Positions 10,751 through 26,600 of a DNA stretch of 64,000 nt are shown here, one piece after another. A model generated the notes under the pieces. That model searched no databases. It was not told the origin of the DNA and saw nothing but the letters and a program-made list of their open reading frames with translations. A program made the position numbers and the translations under genes. The number at the start of each line of letters is the position of its first letter. Within the stretch, counting starts at the first letter, position 1. This stretch comes from Takakia lepidozioides (Eukaryota > Plantae > Bryophyta): NCBI GenBank assembly GCA_030704615.1, contig CM060734.1, positions 57,784,001 to 57,848,000 of the forward strand. Direction: 5' to 3'.

Positions 10751-10820
10751 ATGAGGGAGGGAGATGACATGACTGGGGTGGCCGATTTTGGTTCAGCATC
10801 CAGGCACAAGGGATTCTTCA

Positions 10821-13454
10821 ATGGAAAGTCTCAATTCCTTGTTTTTGTGGAGGAAAAGACGGCCTGAGAACAGGGCCTTGTTGGATAGGAGAAATTTGGG
10901 AAGTAAAGAGGCGTGGGACCAAATACCAGCCTCCTTTGACAGCTCCCAGCGCACAGTCGAGTCGGACGGAACTCCGTGCTGGCCTTTGTTCAACTGGGCG
11001 ACCTTCCCATGCAAGAAAGCGAAGCTATCATCGGGGTGTTGCAGCAAGGATCCAGGGCCTGGATCCAAAATACATCCCCTTTCCTCCCGTATAATTAGAG
11101 AGCGCAATTCAAACCCGACCAGGAAAAATCATGACCATCACAGTAGTGAAACTGTGAACAGGGAGGAAAGCTCTCCCTTTTCATGGGGTCCTTTTGCGTT
11201 GGGGTTTAATTGCATCGGAATGCCTTCATGTGATCGGCGACGGACAGGGGAGCCGAGAGAGAGCAGGCGGCGGTGTAGCAGAAGCCCAAAGAAGGGCATA
11301 GGCCTGAGTGTGCTTGGATTATGGCCTGCAGCCTCCAAGAAAGCACCGCATGGTGAAGATTTGATATCAATTATTACAAACCAGACCAGCTGGAAATGGT
11401 TCATTTCCTCAGACTCCATCTTGCAGAGCTTCATGGATGAAGCTGCAACACTGAAGCACAAGGATAGCAAGGAATTGAACGAGATGCGCCTTCTGTTGCT
11501 GAAAGGGCAGCTGACCTACAATCGACTGAGGAGGTATCCAAAAGCGGTGTTGAAGGTGTTTGTATTACTGCTGCGCAACGTGGACCCCCCCAATGCCCAG
11601 AAAAAAGTACTGATTGATCTGTGCACCAAGTGGTGCTGTAAGAACAAAAACTACTTTTGCTATCTTGAAAATTTCAAAGGAGGGAATACTAGAGGGGGGA
11701 GCAGTGGGGATGAAGCTGAGAGCCATGACAGTTATATGGGCTCCAAAATCTTGAAACACTGGCCAGATAAAGGTGGCATCTCAGACACAGCTGCAAATGG
11801 TGGATTTGCGGATGCAAGTAGTTATAAGGACATTATGAGTAAGAGTGAATCTACAGAGGATTCCATGCTCGACGACAGTGGCTTGAGGTACTCATCATCT
11901 TATGCAACATGACTCTCTAAGAAAATCGTGTTACTGCTTTAAGATAATCTAACACACACCACCGGGGATAAGAAAGCTTGGACTTCATATCCATATATGT
12001 GACAATGATCTGAGAAGTGTTTGACAACAGTTTCACCTACTGGGAACAGCTTGCACATGGGGAGCAGCATCTTGGATCATCAAATTCTGAGCAGTGAAGA
12101 TGACAACGAGTTGGAAAGCATGTGCACTGACGATGATGCAGAATGTTCGAGTGTTGTTCAAGACCATGAGCCCACCTACTGCCCATGCTTTGCTTGCAAC
12201 AGCAACGATGAGTTTTGCTATGGATGCATGTGTACGGTTTGCAAACTTGTGTGCCGACCTTGGGAGTCCTTCAACATAATCACATGCAGGGCATGTGCAC
12301 ACATGGCTCATTTGCGGTGTGCAGTGAAGATGTGCCTTGCAGGATGTGTGGCTGACAGGGGGCTTGAAAGCGAGTACTGGTGTCAGAGTTGTGGCGCTAA
12401 GGTATCACCATTCCTCTGTGTTCTTCCTGCTAGAGAACCTTCCATTTTTGCAGACTACATTGAAGCACTCCTGGGGGATATGGACCTTTTTCATCGTCAA
12501 ATGTCTGGTTTAATGTGAAGGAGGACTTGGTGCCGTATTGGAAAGCGCGACTGAGGGATGCAAGCCAGAGCAATGATAAGCAAACAATGGAAAGCCATCT
12601 ATATTGTGCAATGATTGCGCTCACCAACACACAGCGGCCCCGTTACAAGGACCTACAGGCGCTTGTTACGGAAGCTTGGGCTCAGATTGCCAATGGCACT
12701 CGATTCTCTGATGTTCAAGGCCTTGTGGGGCTCATTTGCTCTGAAATCGAGTCCCAAAGTTCAGTACAAAGTGACCTAGGTAAGCACATGCAAACTGTGA
12801 ATACTTGTGCCCCTTATTTCTTTCCCCAACAACTTGGGAGGGCAAGAATTTCTCTCTTTATGTTCCTTTCCCCCTACCTGAATGTCATGATGCCTTACAC
12901 ATAGTCAGAAGAGCAATTGTAAGTAGCTCTCTCTTGCATACTCTCCTTTGTTGGCATTGGCCTTCTCCCAGCCTTTGCACTTTGCAGTGGCAAGTGTGAA
13001 CATTGATAGAAAGTATGTGTCGTGAAGAACTAGACAAATACAATTACCAGATTTTATCCATTGCGGATGAGTGGTGAGTGTCAAATGAGTGCATGATTAT
13101 TTACAGAGCCTTACAAGTGGCGTTGCATGCACAGTTGGAGTAAACATTCAAGAATATGCTTCGGATTTGTTGAAGAAAGCAGAAGAGGATGCAACCGATG
13201 TCACTGAGACACGGCAAGAGGTTGAGGCATGGAAAGGGGTCTTGCAACAAACTGAACAACAATTGAAGCGCCTGGAACTGAAGTTGGATGCAAAAACAAA
13301 GAGTGCTCTCTTCTCAAGGGCTGCAGCTGTCATTGCACGAAAGCGCATACAAGAGTCTCAAATTTGTCAGCCACCTTTTGTGGCTGGAAATGAAGAACAG
13401 GTAAACACTAATGATGACATCGTGGACAATCTCACAGCGATGTTAAAAAACTAA
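10821..13454 (+). CDS. OBERON/VIN3-type PHD-finger protein (paralogue A), multi-exon
   Basis: Predicted exons 10821-11838, 12031-12401, 12521-12779 and 13135-13454 (possible further donor at 13401); all GT-AG joins keep frame. Contains CPCFAC..FCYGCMCTVC..CRACAHMAHLRCA..AG.V...LESEYWCQSCGAKEDLVPYWK (PHD_Oberon-like), then a helical bundle and a coiled coil. Confidence 0.75.
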
Positions 13455-14439
13455 ATGAGGTGGGACATAAAACCAATGAGGTAAAAGTTGTGAAATCTTG
13501 TGCAAGTAGTTCATTCGACTGCTGAACAGATCATATTGTTCAAGCTTACCTCCTTTTCCTGACAAGAACTATGATCTTGGGATTGCAACTTTTATAAACT
13601 TTGGGATCCAACAGGCCACAAAACACAAACCATTGAAGTCGAGTTTAGGTGCTTGGCTCAAGTCTGGTAGTTTTCAGCATCTTCTTTCTCATTTCAAATA
13701 TGTTCTTGATTATCCACATTCCCGATTAAGTTCCAGACAGACGAACACCACAAGGAACAGTTTTGTTCTCACCAAGTACGAGTATGTGGCTTCAGTCCAT
13801 GAAAGATACGGAAAATGCTGAAAAGATGCTGAAAATGCTGTGATGTAACTAGTAACCACCTCGGTCTGATGGGATTTTTCTGCAAAACTTCTGCATGAGT
13901 TGTATTCCTAGCGCAGTTGATCACTAGATCAGATTTAAATCAAATGGTCAATACATGGCTTTCCCATACATAGTAGACAATGGGCTGTGAACTCCAGATA
14001 GTCCATAGTGCGCACAAATACGAGGCATTCATCAGAACGGGTTTGCTTCAGAATGCAGGGAATACCAACTTGCAAAAGAGGTGTCAACGACATTCAGTAG
14101 GACAACAAAAACGATTATGATTGGTTTTACAATGACGATATGGACATTGTAGGCATTGTAGCAGAGAGCTGTTCCATACCCAGAAGCCGGAAACTAAGTT
14201 GAATTTGTTACAGAAAACTAGAAAGTTCTGTATTGACAACCTACGGCACTTCCACTCAAGCCAGAAGTAGATGGCAAGAAATTTAGATGGGAACAAAGAG
14301 AACCACTCCCACTAAGGAGCTTCTATAAAGAGTGGCACAGATAGTTATCTCCTAACTAGGTGAGTCATCTTAATTCCATCGTGGCTACCTGAGGGATGCG
14401 AAAGAGACGAGGAAGGGAGGAAACGAGGCGAGCTTCTAA

Positions 14440-17400
14440 TCACTGGGACTGGTACAATGAGACCATGTAATCCAACTTAAAACTGTCAGATTCCACTATC
14501 TCTCTCTGGGCCATGAGTTGGTCCAGCAATGCTGAAAATGCAGGGAGTGAGTCTTCACCGGTAGGACCCTGGAAGTAGGCCACATCATGCTGGAGCTGCT
14601 CCAGCACAGAGCTGGCACGTTGGAATTCCGCCCTCTGAACCTCCACTTGTTCCAACGTCACCCCCATTCTTACCTGTACCTGTTTCAAACAATGACACAT
14701 CCCTCCCGTATAAAACTCTAAGGTGATACAGCACTAAACGAATTTTGTTCAACAACAACCCCCCCCCCCCCACTGCACCCAAGAGAGACAGGATGACCGA
14801 ACCAAACCACATTGTTAACACTCTCAGTATATCCATGTTCTTCATTTATAATAGGATCAGGCCGTTTAGTAGATGAGATTGGGGTTCTCCCAACTATCCA
14901 GTAGCCGTCCTCTACCCATAATGCAAGACTTGAGCAGAACGACAGAGAAAGATAAGCTACATAGCTGAACGTAGCTTCTCTGCCTGGTCAGTACATGACC
15001 TTGAGGCCTCTTCCAGTAAATGTATCACTCAGAAATAATGTCATCAACAGTTTCACATGTGGTACTTCAAACATCATGCACCGATATATTTCGCTCCTGC
15101 AGATATCAACGTCAAATTAAGTAACATGTACTCCAGAGGAGTATAGCATTCATGATTGACATGACCAATCCTCCATTAGACTGAATTATGCCAATCAATT
15201 CCAGATCTTTCCTCTGTCAGAGGATCCTAGTTAGTCTCGACAGACTGTTGTGCCCAGAATGTGCTTAATGAAAAGATACAGTAAATCTGCACCAGTTACC
15301 AACCAATCCAGTTTCATGAAAGTATGCATGTGGCAGGAGTACCTGCTTCATCACTTTTATTCGGCGGCGTCCTTTGTAAGCTTGCAAACTCAACGTAGTG
15401 GCACGATGTGCATGAGCCTTGGCTTCAGCATCAGCTTGCTGAACATGCTGTGCCAGCAAAGCTCGTTGGGCTTCAGCTACCTTTTCAGCACGTTCCCATT
15501 CTTCATATTCTTCCTTAGCTTCCTTTTGCCATGCAGACACTTTCTTCTCCTCATCCCGCCAGTTAATGTTGTGTCCAACCACCAGTGCTTCCTGTGCCCA
15601 CTCAGCATCTTGACCTGTTCCCATGATTTATATAAGCAACCAATCATCATCGCTGATATCAACATCTTTCCGGCCATGACAGAGAGATACTGTCAGTGAA
15701 CCTTTTGCAGCAAACGTCCCATCGCCATACCATGAGGGGCTCCCACCATGCATCGCATTGAAATTAGGACCACTACGTGACCAATTTCAGAGGAGTTGCT
15801 TCCAGTCCTACCTAGCCCAGTAAAATACCAAACAAATACAAGAAACAACAAGAATCCAGCAAAGTAACACTAACCTCTAATTCCCCATAACCCCCTGCCT
15901 CAATATATACATAGAAGTAAAAGAAAAACAGTTGAGGTCCCATTGTTGTAGCATGGTACAAAAAGAATGTTAGGGGGCTGCTTGGCCCGTCTAACAGAAA
16001 TCCCCCACTATTACTCGTCCAACTACATAATCAACCTAGTTCTTCTAATTCTTCAGGCAGAACTTGGCACACCAAGTAATACATGGCGTCTGTCATGCCC
16101 AGAATAGCTATTGAAGAACAAACCAAATAAAAGTCTATTACTGGAAGTAATGAAAAGAGGATAAGAAGTACCAAGAGGGGTATCCTCGTCAATGAGTGCA
16201 TCCAGTTCTTCCCGAATGAGTTGCAAGAAATCATGTATTTCAGTGCTGGGAGAGGGGCACTGCTGTACCAACTGGTGGGCTTCCATCACCTTGTGCTGTA
16301 AGGGTTCATATGTAACCCTCTCAGTGTCTTTCAAGACCAGAACAGCTAATAATAGGTGTTTCTCTATCTCGTCCACAAGATGGCTGCTCACTGCAGACTC
16401 CAACCTCTTCTTCCAAAAGTCCAACAAATCAAACCTTTCAGAGCAGACTGGGCATTGAAACTCCCCATCCAGGTGACGTTGCTTAAACACACCAGCTTGT
16501 TGAATATTGAAGGCACAGAGGAAGTGACACACATGAGAGCATGCTCCACACTCGAGGACCTTCCACTTCTCATCAGGCCATATCCCCACCTTGCACAAGC
16601 TACACATGCATCCACGACAGAAGGATACTTGTGTGCAGCTCTTGCACAAGCAAATTGTAGCAGCCACTTCACATCCTGGCCCTGTCAAAAGTGATGTCAC
16701 ACGGCTATGGCTAGTTTTCTCTCTCCCTCCTACTATCCCCTCCCTCCGTCCAAGATCAGTGTTGGACAAATCTGCCATCTCCTGAGCTCCACCATCATAC
16801 TTGACCTGTCTATGACCTGTGCCTTCTGAGAGAATCCAATGGGCACCAGCATGTTCAACATGTCCATCACCTCTATCCTGAGCTACATCTCCAGCCTCTA
16901 TTGGTGGCAGATCCCCTTCTTTGACTGCTTCCAGACTTCCATTCAAATCAAACGGTGCTGGTGGGCTCTCTACATGCTTAAAGTTCTGGAAAAAGCTGAG
17001 TGCTGTAAATTCTTCAACACCTTTGTTATGCAGCACACCCTCGGCATTTGCAGACCCCACCATTGCTGCATTGACTACGCCCACTTGATCCGAATAAGGT
17101 TGAATCTCTTGGCGACTGGATTGCACAGCCTCACTGGGATGGCCGTGCTCAAGGGTATGTCCAACCTCAATTGAACCATTTTCAGCCCCTTGGTCATTAG
17201 ACAACAATTTGCCGCCAAATTGGGTAGCCTCCTTAGTAAGGGTCCTGATTTTACCAGCCTCCAGCAAGCACCAGTATTGCTTGTGCTTGCATCGCCAGTC
17301 CACACACAAGGACGCAAGCTCAGTCTTTGCTAGAGAAACAGGGGGGTCCTCATTCCTCAAAATAGAAACAAACACGCAGAGCACAGGTGGTTCATAGCGT

Positions 17401-19569
17401 AGTAAGTTGTTGACTTCCAGCTTTCGCTTGAGTAATAGACCCCTCATTTGAGTCATTTCTGATGCACTCTTGCCCTTCAGGCGTCCTGCCTCCTCCATAA
17501 ATTGTCGAAAGACATCGTTTCCATTGTGAAGCCATTTGTAGCTCGATGGAGTGGACAGAATAGACTTGAATGAATGCTTGAGAGCACCAGCGAGTCGCGC
17601 CTCAGTTTTCTTCCTCTTTCTTCCAGTCATGAGGGTTGCTGCAGCAAACGGCGTCACTTTATGTGGGAGGTCATTTGATAACATCAAACCACTCTTGTCT
17701 GCTTTCTCCTGGCCATTTTCCATAACCAATGATATGATCAAAAACTTCTGCCAGTTCCAGCATAAAAGCTTGATGGTCCTACCTGATTTCCACCCATTTC
17801 TCCATCACCCAAGCTTTGTGGTGTGCCTACAGTGCTGGTATAACAACTGCAATTGGAAATTGGCAGCGGAAATGGGGGGCCTTCTTAGGTTACCCATGCT
17901 AGTGCTGTTTTTCTATGGCCACAAGGCTACACCAAACAACATCTTACATGAGTACATTCTATGTTAGAACTTAGCAACACTTCAACACTCATCTTCCGCG
18001 TGTGCATGTATCACCATTGGCACAGGAAAAATGGTTGCATCCCATGTACAAATTTGCACGCAGCTGGTAGGGGGCCAAGAGGCTGTGTCATCTTGGCCAT
18101 GGCACCTATCACCTACCACCTAGTTTCTCCATAATCCCATTCTCCTAAACCGTGACCCGACGACCTGGCAAGAAAGAGAACTGCACTGCGAAACTCCATC
18201 CCAGCTAGCAGCAGGCAGATGTTTGTTGCACCCGAATAATGAACCCCTAGCACTAGGTTCTGTGGCCATGGATCCCTCTCGCATATGTGCATGGGCTACC
18301 AGAACCAGAAAAAAGCACAAGTAGAATTTAATGCCTGCTCCCATCTCTCTGCGGCGAGTAATCCTTACAGTGTGAATCTGATACCTTAAAAACTGCAGTC
18401 AGAGAATTAAGCATGACAATATTGTACCCCACATATTAACATTCTGAATAGTCACTGAAATAGGACCCTGGCATTTAAAAGAGTCTGATGGTAAAGGATG
18501 TTACCATGTGAGGTGCGAGGCCCTTTTGAGCATTCTTTTTCATACGCTTCCTCTTAGCAGACATCTCATCATCCTCAGCTTGCTTTCTCTTGGCAGATGA
18601 TTCCTCCTCTTCAGATAGAATTTTATGTGCAATTATGTCACCATCTTGAGACCCCCTCCCACGTTTCTTGGGTACAGCTAAGACCCCCGGCAATGGCCCG
18701 AACTTGAAGTCTTGCAACAACAACCCAACGACACAATCGACGTTTTAGAGGTGGCCCGCATCTGTGCAGTGTTTAGACACTCTCCCGGCCAAAATAGGAA
18801 GAAAAAGGGTAGATATGTCTTCACTTCCAGAGAGAAAAGAGTAGATGAAAGGCAGCTGGTTTGAGCAAAGAAAAATATGAAGGAGTGGAATCAAATGGAA
18901 TGGATGTAGACCCTACCTACAGTCGTAAGATCAAAGTTTGTAGCCATGCAACAGGGCGGTTAAAGACTGCACTTGGACAAGCATACATTATGCCCATTCA
19001 GCCAACTCATCTGGAATTTTATCAACTTACTTCAGCTCCGTTCTACATACCAGGGCTTGGCCCTGCAGCTGTGCGACCTAGGTGGAAAGCATTGTCAGTG
19101 AAGTCTTGCTCCCTACATCTCTGGCTACAAAATATTCTTCAGTCCCATGAAATGTCGTTGAACTAGACCCACATAATCATCTGCTAGAGCCTGAACTGGT
19201 TACAGAAAACCCACTGAGTTCAGTTACACAAATTTTCTCAGAAAGTATCCCCAGCACGGACTTTCTTAATATTTGCATCCCATCCGCTATCAGAGGAGGT
19301 GTAACTACCTTAAGTAGAGGACGAATTTCCAAACGAAACTCACCTTCTGGGCCGACCCGCCAGCAGAATTCACTGAAGGCAGGTGGGTTTGGAATAGAAG
19401 AGAGGTAGTCTTGTAGCTGTATCTGGGACCGAATGCGCTTCCCGGTGGGCGAGCAAAAATACATATCTGACACCCTTTGCCCTGCTTTCCATTTCCAGTC
19501 CTTCGGTGCGAAGGGCGGACCCTCTCCCGTCCGCCCTGCTAGGGGATGTGGTATAGGGTCGTGACCCAT
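14440..19569 (-). CDS. MBD + AT-hook-like + OBERON/VIN3-type PHD + coiled-coil protein (paralogue B), multi-exon, about 850 aa if all exons join
   Basis: Predicted exons 19569-19344, 18710-18505, about 17747-16172, about 16062-16036, about 15614-15343 and about 14679-14440; phases are compatible. Exon 1: GEGPPFAPKDWKWKAGQRVSDMYFCSPTGKRIRSQIQLQDYL..EFCW (MBD). Exon 2: PKKRGRGS. Exon 3: CLCKSC..FCRGCMCSLC..CGACSHVCHFLCA..LDGEFQCPVC..DLLDFWKKRL. The join between exons 2 and 3 is the least certain. Confidence 0.72.
17913..17960 (+). mobile_element. Roughly 50-bp 3'-end copy of the RTE-X-like LINE
   Basis: ctatggccacaaggctacaccaaacaacatcttacatgagtacattct matches 61240-61280. Confidence 0.75.
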
Positions 19570-21095
19570 TATCCTTTATAGGCTTCGAATCTACGAAAGC
19601 ACTCGAGCTGGAAAAGAAGAGGGTGGAGAAACTGTCAGACCAGACTACTGTATCTCTTTTGTCAAGGGCGGTTTCGCAACAGATGTTCAGAAGATTTTCA
19701 CAACTGCTCAGCGCATCTTGGTGCCCAAGCAGATTGACATCGGAAGGCCCGTTCTCTCGCTCTCATGCACAGTGGAATCTCAAAGAGACAAGCGACAAGA
19801 TTACATAAAACTGTTACCATCGAAGTGCCTGACATCAAGAACTTTTTCTCTCCCATTCTCGCATAGATTGGATGGATAGTACACCCACCTAGTCAAGAAG
19901 CTGCACGAATAGAAGAAACTTCGGTTTGGAAGTTACAAATGGTAAACCGGTCGTTACCAGTCTCTCCTTCGCCGTTAACTCCACTTTCCGGCCTTCATAA
20001 TCACACCCATTACAGCGTATTGCAGCTACGTACAAAGCTGCAGTCAGGCGCTTGGTGTGCTGGCTTTGGCGGCTGCGGCCTCAATCACTCTGCCACTTGA
20101 TTTTTTCGTCTTTCCATGTTCCCATGCTGGAAAGGGTACCTATTCAATTAGCCTTTCGCTTAGGCGTCCAAGAAAATATTTCCACCCCCCCTCCCTCTCT
20201 CCTAACATGGCAATACACAATAAACCTCCATTGGAGGATGACACTCCATGTAAACCCTATAGAGCAGAGAAGAAATGGAAAACCTATACGAAATTTGCCA
20301 TTACGAAGTGACACACTCCGAGGTGAAAGGACGTAATTATGGCTCGAAAGTTGAGGCACCGCCCGGAGCCTACCTAAAGTGCAATAGGTATGAAATGGAC
20401 TCAAGTACTAATAAGATATCTGTTGCTTTTAGCCAGGTTGCGACATTGCGACGGCGGGTTGACATCACTCACACCACGCATCGCGCCTCTCAATCTACCC
20501 TTACCTCTGACCGATTACGTACATGGCCCTGTCTCGCCTCCATCTACAGCCGCACTAAAAACTACGTGAGTACCAGGTAGAACAAACAAAACCACAAAAT
20601 CCAGACACTCTCAATCGGAAATCCATCCGAAGCTGGGAAAACAGTGTGTTCTATTAACAGCATGCAGTACTATTATGTCCTTTAGCGTGGATTCTTTACA
20701 CTTTCTGACCTTCAAATGATCTCATCACAGCAACCTATATCGCAACTCCACAGTGGGAGCAATCACCGACTACCGCTGACCAAATCCCACTGGAAAACAT
20801 ACCTACCTACCTCTCCGCCATAGTTGAATGGAATCATCACTGCTCCATCTCTGACATCACACACTGTGTCGTCTTCCTCGCGTCCACAGCCCTAATCCGC
20901 CATAGCCAGGGCGCAGCGCTTATATACTATACACAGCCACGCATGCGAAGCGGTATGGGATAAATGGGGAATATGGCGTATAGTTATTATATTATGCTTC
21001 GTAATGCGAGATGCCTGGCAAAATCTGACGTGATCGAATTCTTACTAACTATATTTTGAGGGGTTGGCGCGCACGTCTTTTTAAAGCGCTTCAGG

Positions 21096-23698: not shown

Positions 23699-26600
23699 CA
23701 GTGTTGGTCTGGTATATAGGGGCCAGCCTGGTATCAAGAATGGTATCAACACTGGTATGAAGAACCAGACCAGGCTGGTCTCAACAGTTGTGATACTCAG
23801 GTGTAAACTAATATACCCCTGGTATGAGATTTTGTAAGAAACGGGAAAAGTCCAGACCAGCCTGGTAGCACTTTCGGAATACCAGACTTCATACTCGATG
23901 CACGTTCACCTTCTTCCTTCTTAGCCTAGTATCGGTATCCAGCAAACTTAGGGTTCTTAGTAAGCTATGGAGGGTTGTTGCAACTCATTATTGCAATGGC
24001 GGCATTCATTCATAATGTGTTGGTAGTTGGTATTTAGTAGGCGGGGTTTGTGGCGCCGGCCACGTTTCAATGCTGTCGGCCAAGCATCAACGCAGCTTTC
24101 CACTTTCTACTTAGGTTTTGTTCTGTGTAACTGACTTAGGTTGCACCGAACCCGTGTTTTTGTCTGTGTGTTGTCAAATGAACGATATGTTTAACGCAGC
24201 TTTTGGTAAGGTTTGATCGTTCATCATGGATCCCAACTACTTGCATGTTGAGCATGAGGATTTTTGGGAACCTGATGAGGATGAGGGGACAGACACAGGG
24301 TTGGCAACCGAATCTTTGAGCGAGCACACAGTGGAGACGGTGGCGGAGGTGCTTGCTGCCGAGGAAGAAGCGATTTGGAAAGTGTAGCTCTTACAACTTG
24401 TGAAGAACCAAAAAATTTGGTACCCACATCACATATCTGCACCTGCTTGGGCGTTTTTGTGCTCAACGACCCAGCAACAGCCGTGGACGTTCAAGTTTGT
24501 CAAATCATGCGGTGCGTGTTATGCCATCCTACAAGCCCATCTTCCAGTTCGAGCAACAGAACCAGATCTCGGAAAGGGATTATTGCATACAATCCTTCTC
24601 ATGGCATTACGAGTATAAAGAAACATGTGGGTAACAAACACGGTGGTGCACTCACAAGATATAAAGAGCACAAACGATCTGCAGATGAGGCTCAAGGTGG
24701 ACGCCAAAAATGTAAGAAGAGAAGGAACTCGGTTGCACCCACTGCCATTACGGAGTTCTTTGGTAGCAAACATCCTTACAGATGTAACGATCCTGGTCAG
24801 CTACACGTCATAGAAGATCTGGTTTTGTTCATCGCCAAAGGTTACATGCCTATGTCAGTTGTTGAGAGTAGTTGGTTACGGCGATTAGTTTTACGGCAAT
24901 GTGATAAGGTGCGCTTTCCTTCTCGCAAGCAGCTTGTGCATGAGCACATCCTGGCGATGCTAGCAAAAACAATTGAGAGTTACGTACTCCCATCCATTGC
25001 ACAATGTTCCACAGCCACGGCCACTTTTGATTTGTGGATGTCCAGATCGGGATTTTACACTTTTGCCCTGGTCATTAACTTCATCAATGAGGAGTGGCTT
25101 CTATGCCATGTTACTGTAGGTTTGTTTGAGGCACCAGACACTTCTGGCGCAGCACTGGCGGAACAGGTTAAGAAGCTTCTGGCCGAGTACAAGCTTACGG
25201 ACAAAATTATCTCGTATGTGAAGGATGAAGGGGCTAACTTAAACACTCTTGCACAAGCTCTCACATCAGTTGTCTCTTGCACACCTCTGGAACTTCAATC
25301 ACCATTTGTTGGTGTTTGTTTTGGGCATCTCATGTCAAAGGCTTGCCAATACGCCACAACTGAGAGCAAAGTGGGTGCTGGAATGAAAGAAGTTAGTCTT
25401 GTGGATGCTCAAAGTGCCTTGCAGAAGACAATAACATGGACTAAGAAATCAGGAAAGGGAAGACAGGAATGGGATCTTGCCTGTAAGGAAGTTGGATTGC
25501 GGCCAAGAAAGCTTAAAACCCCTGTCAAAACGCGATTTGCCTCAAAGGTGGTGCTCTTCCAAGAGACCTTGGAATATTCTACAGCGATTAACTTGTGCTA
25601 CAGTCGACAGACATCTCGACTTCAATCTCGGGTACCTGGTGGCTCAACATAGGCCATCGCCAAGGCAGTCACTGAAACTCTTACACCTGTTGTGAAGCAA
25701 TGCATTTTAAATCAAACTAGAGGATATTGGCTGTTGTCGGATACCTTGTTTGCAGCATTCTCTATTGCTACAAAAATGAGTCAAGATTATAATCGTCGGG
25801 CAGCCAGGAACCCTCCACTAACATGTGGTGATTTTGAGCAAGAGTTGGAAATCCTGTATGCTCGAATGGGACTAGAAGTTATCAATGTCTTGCGGCCTTT
25901 TCTATCTTTTGCAGTCACTTTTAATCGAGGCCATGCACAGAATATGTGTGCACTTATACTTGATCCTCGGTACAAAGGCCTGCAGTGCATCATGGACTAT
26001 GGAGGACGAGAAAATACAAAGGCTATTAACTGCATTCAAGCACCTCAATCCAGGCCGTGTAGATAGTCCTCCTCCAGAAGAGCCACTCCCTCAGGAATCA
26101 CTATGGGGAGTTTCTACCTCAACTGAGGAGGCGAGCTTAGGGCTTGTAAAAAGTGAGTTATCAATGTATCGCCGTTTGATTGTGAATCCAGATGATGTCA
26201 AGTCTCCGTTATTGTGGTGGAAGGATCATGAAAGCCGCTTCCCTAATGTAGGGTTTTTGGCTCGCCAATTTCTAGGAATACCAGGTTCGCAGATTGAGAC
26301 CGAACGCATATTCAGCATTGCAGGGATATTTACCAGTATGCGTCGATGCCGACTTGGAGTGAAGAACATGGACAAATTAGTGATGATTTTAAAGAACTGG
26401 CCTAGCGATGCAAGGACTGGTTGCCCTCTCGCTGATAAGGGAGTGGAGGAATTTTTCATTGCTGAAGATGATCTCCTTGAAGATTATGAAGAAGAACTTG
26501 AAGATGCTGGTTACTTTGAGGATGTGTTGTAGCACTTAGTTTCAGTACTTTTTGGCTGTGAGGATGTCTGCAATTGTGTGGCAGCTTCAGTACTCTTAAC

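Follow-up and report, generated by a model that had tools for sequence, protein, structure and literature searches.

A methyl-CpG-binding-type domain joined to a VIN3-type PHD superdomain in a moss gene of an ancient streptophyte family

INTRODUCTION

Plant proteins with a methyl-CpG-binding domain (MBD) are treated as a fixed set, with 13 members in Arabidopsis, and to our knowledge readers of CG methylation are barely known in bryophytes. The residues with which MBDs read methyl-CpG are two arginine fingers together with D121 and Y123, while charged residues at both ends of the L1 loop contact the DNA backbone and matter for affinity (PMC8811898). The PHD superdomain, in turn, has been stated to be confined to VEL and OBERON proteins; that of VIN3 does not bind histone H3 tails, but that of OBERON1 does (PMC9640981). 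Here we describe a gene of the moss Takakia lepidozioides that encodes both units in one protein. It lies in a stretch of 64,000 nucleotides (the window; assembly GCA_030704615.1, contig CM060734.1, positions 57,784,001 to 57,848,000 of the forward strand), whose own numbering is used throughout. A sequence-only reading of this window had proposed an MBD fused to a PHD module of the VIN3/OBERON type, and had suspected that a domain of unknown function in related angiosperm proteins is a diverged MBD. We know of no studied MBD protein that is fused to a PHD superdomain, and a literature search returned no paper on the angiosperm domain (Pfam DUF7081), on an MBD combined with PHD_Oberon, or on the Marchantia gene Mp2g18710. 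As PMC9640981 limits the superdomain to VEL and OBERON proteins, the moss family is not covered there.

RESULTS

MBD and PHD module are encoded by one transcribed gene

The gene occupies the minus strand from an ATG at 19569 to a stop codon at 14440, with a reading frame that stays open across all five exons, and encodes a protein of about 826 residues (coding length 2481 nt, from the corrected exon boundaries). Contigs of a public sequencing run (X1, whose RNA label is a guess) were mapped to the locus; of the words sampled from the 5.1 kb stretch, 46% are present in this run, approximately the exonic share. Four GT-AG joints are found in the contigs (19344/18710, 18505/17708, 16172/15614 and 15343/14679), and three contigs that overlap by 20–23 letters together cover the mRNA, extending above 19900 at one end and below 14200 at the other; since these contigs lack introns, processed RNA is their only possible source. 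The 5′ untranslated region (UTR) extends upstream past 19900 (contig 3 spans 19344–19900 and continues) and the 3′ UTR extends below 14200 (contig 1 spans 14200–14675 and continues). To the joint between exons 2 and 3, exon 2 contributes only 20 letters, compared with a criterion of 31 letters for a bridge.

Searches were made with single exons or with full-length orthologues. All five exons can be aligned, in the same order, with two full-length proteins of Sphagnum, P0002 (843 aa) and P0004 (829 aa); exon 2, a low-complexity linker, aligns poorly (identities per exon are given in Table 1). The exon boundaries proposed from the sequence alone for exons 1 (19569–19344) and 2 (18710–18505) agree with the joints in X1, and the exon 1 peptide quoted there is identical to the translation of 19345–19569 (−); the large in-frame exon 3, however, starts at 17708 instead of about 17747 and is thus 13 codons shorter than proposed. 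The four joints, with the 20 letters at exons 2–3, and the collinear Sphagnum proteins place the exons in one transcript. The gene is intact and transcribed and probably codes for a nuclear chromatin protein, and we regard its architecture and its assignment to the family described below as practically certain.

The N-terminal domain has the fold and the base-reading residues of an MBD

Residues 21–73 match the Pfam MBD profile (PF01429) with 34.2 bits (cut-off 21; E = 1.9e-8). Among solved structures, exon 1 finds AtMBD11 (6acv) at an E of 6e-6 and MBD2 and MBD1 at about 1e-3, and with a profile built from 19 N-termini of the family, MBD4, MBD2, AtMBD11 and MeCP2 are reached at about 1e-7. 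The AlphaFold2 (AF2) model of the domain, with a predicted local distance difference test score (pLDDT) of 86.9, has strands at residues 14–16, 26–29 and 36–39 and a helix at 49–58, i.e. an MBD-type sheet packed on one helix. When compared with known structures, the model returned MBD/TAM domains in all of the top 36 rows with Foldseek and in the top 37 rows with VIA-align (AtMBD11 Z 6.5; MeCP2 Z 5–6; MBD4 Z 5.8 with a root-mean-square deviation of 2.0 Å over 54 residues), whereas unrelated folds appear from Z 2.6 only. Profile, solved relatives and predicted fold thus bear out the identification of exon 1 as an MBD.

The base-reading set of MeCP2 is present as R32, D35, Y37 and R47, followed by S48. 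Read from the sequence, the spacing of W25 and R32 (+7) equals that of W104 and R111 in MeCP2, D35 and Y37 (+2) are spaced as D121 and Y123, Y37 and R47 (+10) as Y123 and R133, and S48 directly follows R47 as S134 follows R133. These equal spacings make the residue mapping of the sequence-only reading sound, according to which R111, D121, Y123, R133 and S134 are all retained. In the 19 family sequences, which range from Chara to conifers, R32, D35 and R47 are invariant (19/19), S48 is conserved to at least 90% and Y37 is kept in 17. The L1 loop between the first arginine and the aspartate was likewise correctly described as shortened, but by 7 residues instead of about 6: it consists of V33 and S34 only, compared with 9 residues in MeCP2. 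This is common to the whole lineage, which thus lacks an L1 of the usual length whose basic residues contact the backbone.

Apart from this two-residue loop, the domain shares with the described animal and plant MBDs (MeCP2, MBD1/2/4, AtMBD5/6; PF01429) the fold, the Pfam profile, the P-x-x-P-x-x-W entry motif and the equally spaced fingers, Asp, Tyr and Ser; it differs from them additionally by an invariant G-x-G-x-P-x-A-P lead-in that otherwise occurs only in DUF7081. When the single sequence is compared with solved structures, the AtMBD10/11 type ranks first, as it does with VIA, and MBD10/11-like repeat proteins also turned up in the family search. AtMBD11 and the moss MBD have a similar C-terminal half (PTG, QL..YL, a Pro-rich turn and F.W), but in the alignment AtMBD11 reads Glu-Val-Val where the moss domain has Asp-Met-Tyr and Ile-Ser-Asn where the latter has Ile-Arg-Ser. 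It thus lacks reading residues that are kept in the moss MBD, and it has no PHD module.

The PHD module is of the VIN3 type, the C-terminus is not

The large exon matches PHD_Oberon (PF07227) with 53 bits (cut-off 28.8), so that both Pfam profiles expected from the sequence-only reading score above their cut-offs. It also matches the PHD superdomain of VIN3 (7qce) at an E of 5.2e-5 over query residues 12–136. The zinc finger and the Cys4-His-Cys3 pattern are visible in the sequence and align to those of VIN3, and the alignment reaches the first helices of the bundle (query 83–136), as judged by sequence comparison. Outside the family, the closest PHD proteins, both in an exhaustive HMMER search and in the trees described below, are VIN3-like proteins with VIN3_C (VEL polymerisation) and Fn3_VIN3. 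These two domains are absent from the Pfam results for exons 3–5 and for the C-termini of orthologues, and present in the outgroup proteins. Compared with VIN3/VEL (7qce; PMC9640981), the moss protein is therefore alike across zinc finger, PHD finger and first bundle helices, and different in its MBD and its helical C-terminus. Pfam matches, X1 joints, Sphagnum collinearity and the 7qce match together support the proposed combination of an MBD and a VIN3/OBERON-type PHD module in a single gene.

The helical domain that precedes the PHD superdomain gives stand-alone matches to positions of about 188–314 of the family profile, and a Pfam scan assigned no family to it (17253–17579). Resemblance to QRICH1 or to a phage-integrase SAM-like N-terminal domain (Atlas score 0.90, about 100 of 256 features) was weak and was not used. 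The C-terminus encoded by exons 4 and 5 is conserved from liverworts to gymnosperms and carries no name; homology to DUF7615, the C-terminal domain of the angiosperm proteins discussed below, is not supported (no Pfam match; 9% probability with hhalign) and was rejected for now.

In exon 2, the motif KKRGRG had been called AT-hook-like. The motif is present and reads KKRGRGS, without a proline, but its classification as an AT hook did not hold: a Pfam scan of the exon gave no family, including AT_hook (PF02178), at E up to 10, the GRP core (Arg-Gly-Arg-Pro) is missing, and KKRGRG is not conserved in the Sphagnum orthologues. We keep it only as a basic patch resembling a nuclear localisation signal (NLS). 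Elsewhere in the family, Logan contig SRR33208241 (L001 7363–9440) has an MBD reading frame (P0034) and, directly downstream of it, a frame (P0010) in which two canonical AT hooks at the place of the linker precede the helical domain and PHD_Oberon; true AT hooks in the linker were seen in no other family member.

The family is old and consists of two lineages

A full-length family profile was searched against 1.84 billion representatives and returned only 120 proteins at E up to 1e-3, a value that true OBERON proteins did not reach in this search. Full-length relatives with MBD and PHD_Oberon are found in Sphagnum, Marchantia, Riccia, Diphasiastrum, Selaginella, Cryptomeria, Taxus and Chara braunii; their names are automatic only (‘MBD domain-containing protein’ or ‘hypothetical’). 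The moss gene is thus a member of an old family of streptophytes whose proteins are built in the order MBD, basic linker, lineage-specific helical domain, VIN3-type PHD superdomain and long helical C-terminus.

In trees of the PHD region rooted with VIN3-like proteins, this group and the DUF7081 proteins are sisters, united against VIN3-like proteins with 100/100 support. The first lineage, with the short-loop MBD, comprises the Takakia gene, Sphagnum, liverworts, lycophytes, conifers, Ginkgo and, on a long branch, Chara P0024; in these trees it contains no named angiosperm. The DUF7081 lineage comprises Chara P0067, Physcomitrium P0055, Welwitschia and the angiosperms, with P0055 having the full architecture of DUF7081, PHD_Oberon and DUF7615. 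Both lineages go back to the ancestor that Chara shares with land plants.

DUF7081 is a diverged MBD

Angiosperm proteins from Amborella to eudicots start with G-E-G-L-P-Y-A-P, followed by W-x-W-K-x-G-x-R, and carry the Pfam domains DUF7081, PHD_Oberon and DUF7615; Arabidopsis Q8LAG1 (471 aa) is a member. The N-terminal pattern GEGLPYAP..W.W..G.R, which the sequence-only reading had placed ahead of PHD_Oberon, is therefore real and corresponds to DUF7081, whereas the loci named with it (At1g05410 and At3g22520) were not confirmed and appear in the literature only within gene lists. In a profile comparison with hhalign, DUF7081 and the moss MBD family align over 66 columns with 98.1% probability (E = 1.1e-13). 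A bridge is provided by Chara braunii P0067 (1518 aa), of which residues 500–578 match DUF7081 with 35.7 bits (cut-off 27) as well as MBD with 20 bits (cut-off 21), and match the two lineage profiles made here about alike (48.7 and 42.5 bits). By these scores, the Chara domain is a natural intermediate between the MBD and DUF7081 types. The AF2 model of a DUF7081 domain has a pLDDT of 91.6 and, compared with 48,161 chains by VIA, finds MBD/TAM domains in 8 of the top 11 rows, at Z values (2.6–3.6) that are low in absolute terms. Direct comparison of the DUF7081 profile with solved MBDs gives only AtMBD6 at an E of 0.3, and Foldseek an E of 1.1. As these direct matches are too weak alone, the case rests on hhalign, the Chara bridge protein and the VIA ranking, which support the proposal that DUF7081 is a diverged MBD homologous to that of the moss.

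The homology of the N-terminal domain and its signature does not extend to orthology, which the sequence-only reading had implied by placing moss and angiosperm proteins in one family. The moss gene scores 15.9 bits against DUF7081, below the cut-off of 27, has no match to DUF7615 and falls into the sister clade in the PHD tree, a position that makes the angiosperm proteins its old paralogues. They differ from the moss protein by an L1 loop of nearly full length (8 residues), by an insertion of mostly 9–25 residues after the second strand and by the lack of the helical domain before the PHD; their DUF7615 is not detectably related to the moss C-terminus. In 138 DUF7081 proteins the first arginine finger (137/138), the aspartate (136/138) and the tyrosine (128/138) are kept as in the moss MBD. 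The second finger, in contrast, is mostly alanine (102/138) and arginine in only five sequences, including those of Arabidopsis, Sinapis and Camelina.

Many of the records with DUF7081, PHD_Oberon and DUF7615 (among P0156–P0272) are named ‘OBERON 1/2/4-like’, ‘TITANIA’ or ‘CDPK adapter, putative (DUF1423)’; in the trees, however, the PHD regions of these angiosperm proteins group with the moss MBD family, next to VIN3-like proteins.

Coordinates, neighbouring paralogue and surroundings

The features of the gene are collected in Table 1.

Table 1. Features of the MBD-PHD gene in the window, in order of transcription
Feature	Position	Strand	Description and evidence
Exon 1, coding part	19344..19569	−	ATG at 19569; N-terminal MBD, residues 1–75; 77% identity to Sphagnum P0002
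Codon of R32	19474–19476	−	first arginine finger
Codon of D35	19465–19467	−	aspartate of the base-reading set
Codon of Y37	19459–19461	−	tyrosine of the base-reading set
Codon of R47	19429–19431	−	second arginine finger
Codon of S48	19426–19428	−	serine after the second finger
Intron 1	18711..19343	−	633 nt, GT..AG; joint 18710/19344 in X1 contig, 206 letters on the shorter side
Exon 2	18505..18710	−	basic, acidic and Lys-rich linker, NLS-like; 39% identity to Sphagnum
KKRGRG motif	18652–18669	−	basic patch within exon 2
Intron 2	17709..18504	−	796 nt, GT..AG; joint 17707/18504, cut +1; 20 letters on the exon 2 side
Exon 3	16172..17708	−	1537 nt, 512 full codons; spliced contigs; 52% identity to Sphagnum P0002; collinear with P0002 and P0004 at 52–54% identity
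Conserved helical domain	17253..17579	−	between linker and PHD; specific to this lineage and the neighbouring paralogue; conserved alignment block
PHD superdomain	16275..16661	−	zinc finger, PHD finger and first helices of the helical bundle; PHD_Oberon 53 bits and 7qce match
Intron 3	15615..16171	−	557 nt, GT..AG; joint in X1 contig 1, side 255
Exon 4	15343..15614	−	charged helical region; 72% identity to Sphagnum P0002; spliced contig
Intron 4	14680..15342	−	663 nt, GT..AG; joint in X1 contig 1, side 255
Exon 5, coding part and stop	14440..14679	−	conserved helical C-terminus, last residues KLDYMVSLY; 70% identity to Sphagnum P0002

A second member of the family lies at 10788–13454 (+), tail-to-tail with the MBD-PHD gene. 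It encodes the same helical domain, a PHD_Oberon finger with a score of 37.7 bits, the bundle helices and a coiled C-terminal piece; an MBD exon was found for it neither with hidden Markov models on six-frame pieces nor with tblastn. One tblastn match at 19828–19908, considered as a second MBD exon, is broken by stops and was dismissed. Between the neighbour and the main gene the identity is only about 46%, and the neighbour has orthologues of its own (P0029, P0032, P0059), which makes it an old paralogue. Further along the window, at 24375–26532 (+), there are reading frames of 425, 124 and 215 aa; we take the end of the 215 aa frame to resemble the C-terminal dimerisation region of hAT transposases. 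In a second run, X2, a contig of 31 letters with a word depth of 50, far above the remaining locus, maps to 17912–17939 in intron 2 and is probably a short repeat present elsewhere in the genome.

DISCUSSION

The data suggest a mechanism in which the MBD would sit in the major groove of DNA and use R32 and R47 as fingers, with D35 holding the first finger and Y37 contributing to the water network. Because the set of R32, D35, Y37 and R47 is intact, we propose a preference for symmetrically methylated CG; since only two residues are left of the L1 loop that would grip the backbone, the affinity is probably below that of MeCP2 or MBD2. Our reading is thus of a domain whose base-reading part appears intact and under long-term constraint, and whose backbone grip is probably reduced. 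The basic linker would add unspecific DNA affinity and nuclear import, and the PHD superdomain and the helical C-terminus may serve partner binding or self-association. What the analysis establishes is how the gene is built and that it is expressed as spliced RNA, which domains it encodes, that the reading residues are conserved, how the family is distributed and that DUF7081 is homologous to the moss MBD; DNA binding, methyl preference, oligomerisation and a downstream effect on chromatin are what we infer. We give this explanation as a whole a probability of about 0.5; the preference for methylated CG, taken by itself, we hold at slightly less than even odds.

Several observations weigh against this explanation. 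The 7 residues missing from the L1 loop belong to a part whose ends matter for affinity (PMC8811898), the closest solved sequence, AtMBD11, lacks the Asp-x-Tyr and second arginine positions in the alignment, and Y37 is replaced by cysteine in Cryptomeria and in one Diphasiastrum paralogue. Since the DUF7081 lineage has mostly lost the second arginine finger, a domain of this type can persist without it. As the superdomain of VIN3 does not bind H3 tails (PMC9640981), a histone-reader role of the PHD part cannot be assumed either. Finally, the exon 2–3 joint is supported by its 20 letters and by orthology, and not by a single long molecule.

Most of these points can equally be read in favour of a methylation-independent module like AtMBD11, MBD3, the MBD of SETDB1/2 or the TAM domain of BAZ2A, a serious rival that has, in our judgement, a substantial chance of being right. 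Such a module would bind DNA or RNA unspecifically or a protein partner, and the Arg-Asp-Tyr-Arg set would be kept for general nucleic-acid contact or for stability of the fold. The two-residue L1 loop, AtMBD11 as the best solved sequence match, the MBD of SETDB2 and the TAM domains of BAZ2A/B among the structural matches, the change from Tyr to Cys in two lineages and the alanine at the second finger in 102 of 138 sister proteins that nevertheless keep the domain would all be expected from it. However, it leaves the exact base-reading set at canonical spacing to be explained, with R32, D35 and R47 invariant and S48 and Y37 nearly so from Chara to conifers, and MBDs that do not bind methylated DNA usually miss at least one of these residues, e.g. 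AtMBD11.

We consider it very improbable that the MBD and PHD exons are parts of different transcripts or genes which only the gene model has joined. It is true that the mRNA is covered by three contigs and not by one, and that intron 2 is bridged by few letters on one side, but these letters abut exon 3 precisely at a GT..AG intron with the frame staying open, and the overlapping contigs tile the whole mRNA. Moreover, both domains are found in one protein in independent gene models of at least eight other genera, and the N-terminal signature and the PHD clade occur together in both sister lineages. The view that the gene is a duplicate in decay or without function, as the MBD-less paralogue tail-to-tail at 10.8–13.5 kb might suggest, is hardly credible given the frame open in all five exons with canonical splice sites, its presence in spliced X1 contigs, the 52–77% identity to Sphagnum orthologues in each well-aligned exon (1, 3, 4 and 5) with functional residues kept, and the old age of the duplication indicated by the about 46% identity of a neighbour with its own orthologues.

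Returning to the MBD-PHD family as such, its two lineages add a third and a fourth group with a PHD superdomain to VEL and OBERON proteins, and both begin with an MBD-type domain. Bryophytes thereby gain a testable candidate for the reading of CG methylation, DUF7081 gains a fold and a hypothesis, and hundreds of records named ‘OBERON 1/2-like’, ‘TITANIA’ or ‘CDPK adapter’ are flagged as a distinct family. Tractable members are Mp2g18710 of Marchantia and LOC112286875 of Physcomitrium, which represent the two lineages, as well as Arabidopsis Q8LAG1 with both arginine fingers. More tentatively, the family might tie an MBD that truly reads 5-methylcytosine directly to a PHD superdomain of the VIN3 type and to a helical tail that associates with itself, and the DUF7081 proteins might be cryptic MBDs that are missing from every census of plant MBDs; as part of this same speculative picture, the second arginine finger would have been replaced in most DUF7081 proteins and kept in Brassicaceae, including Arabidopsis. 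If this were true, the family would represent a one-protein link in early land plants from CG methylation to Polycomb-like or VEL-like silencing assemblies.

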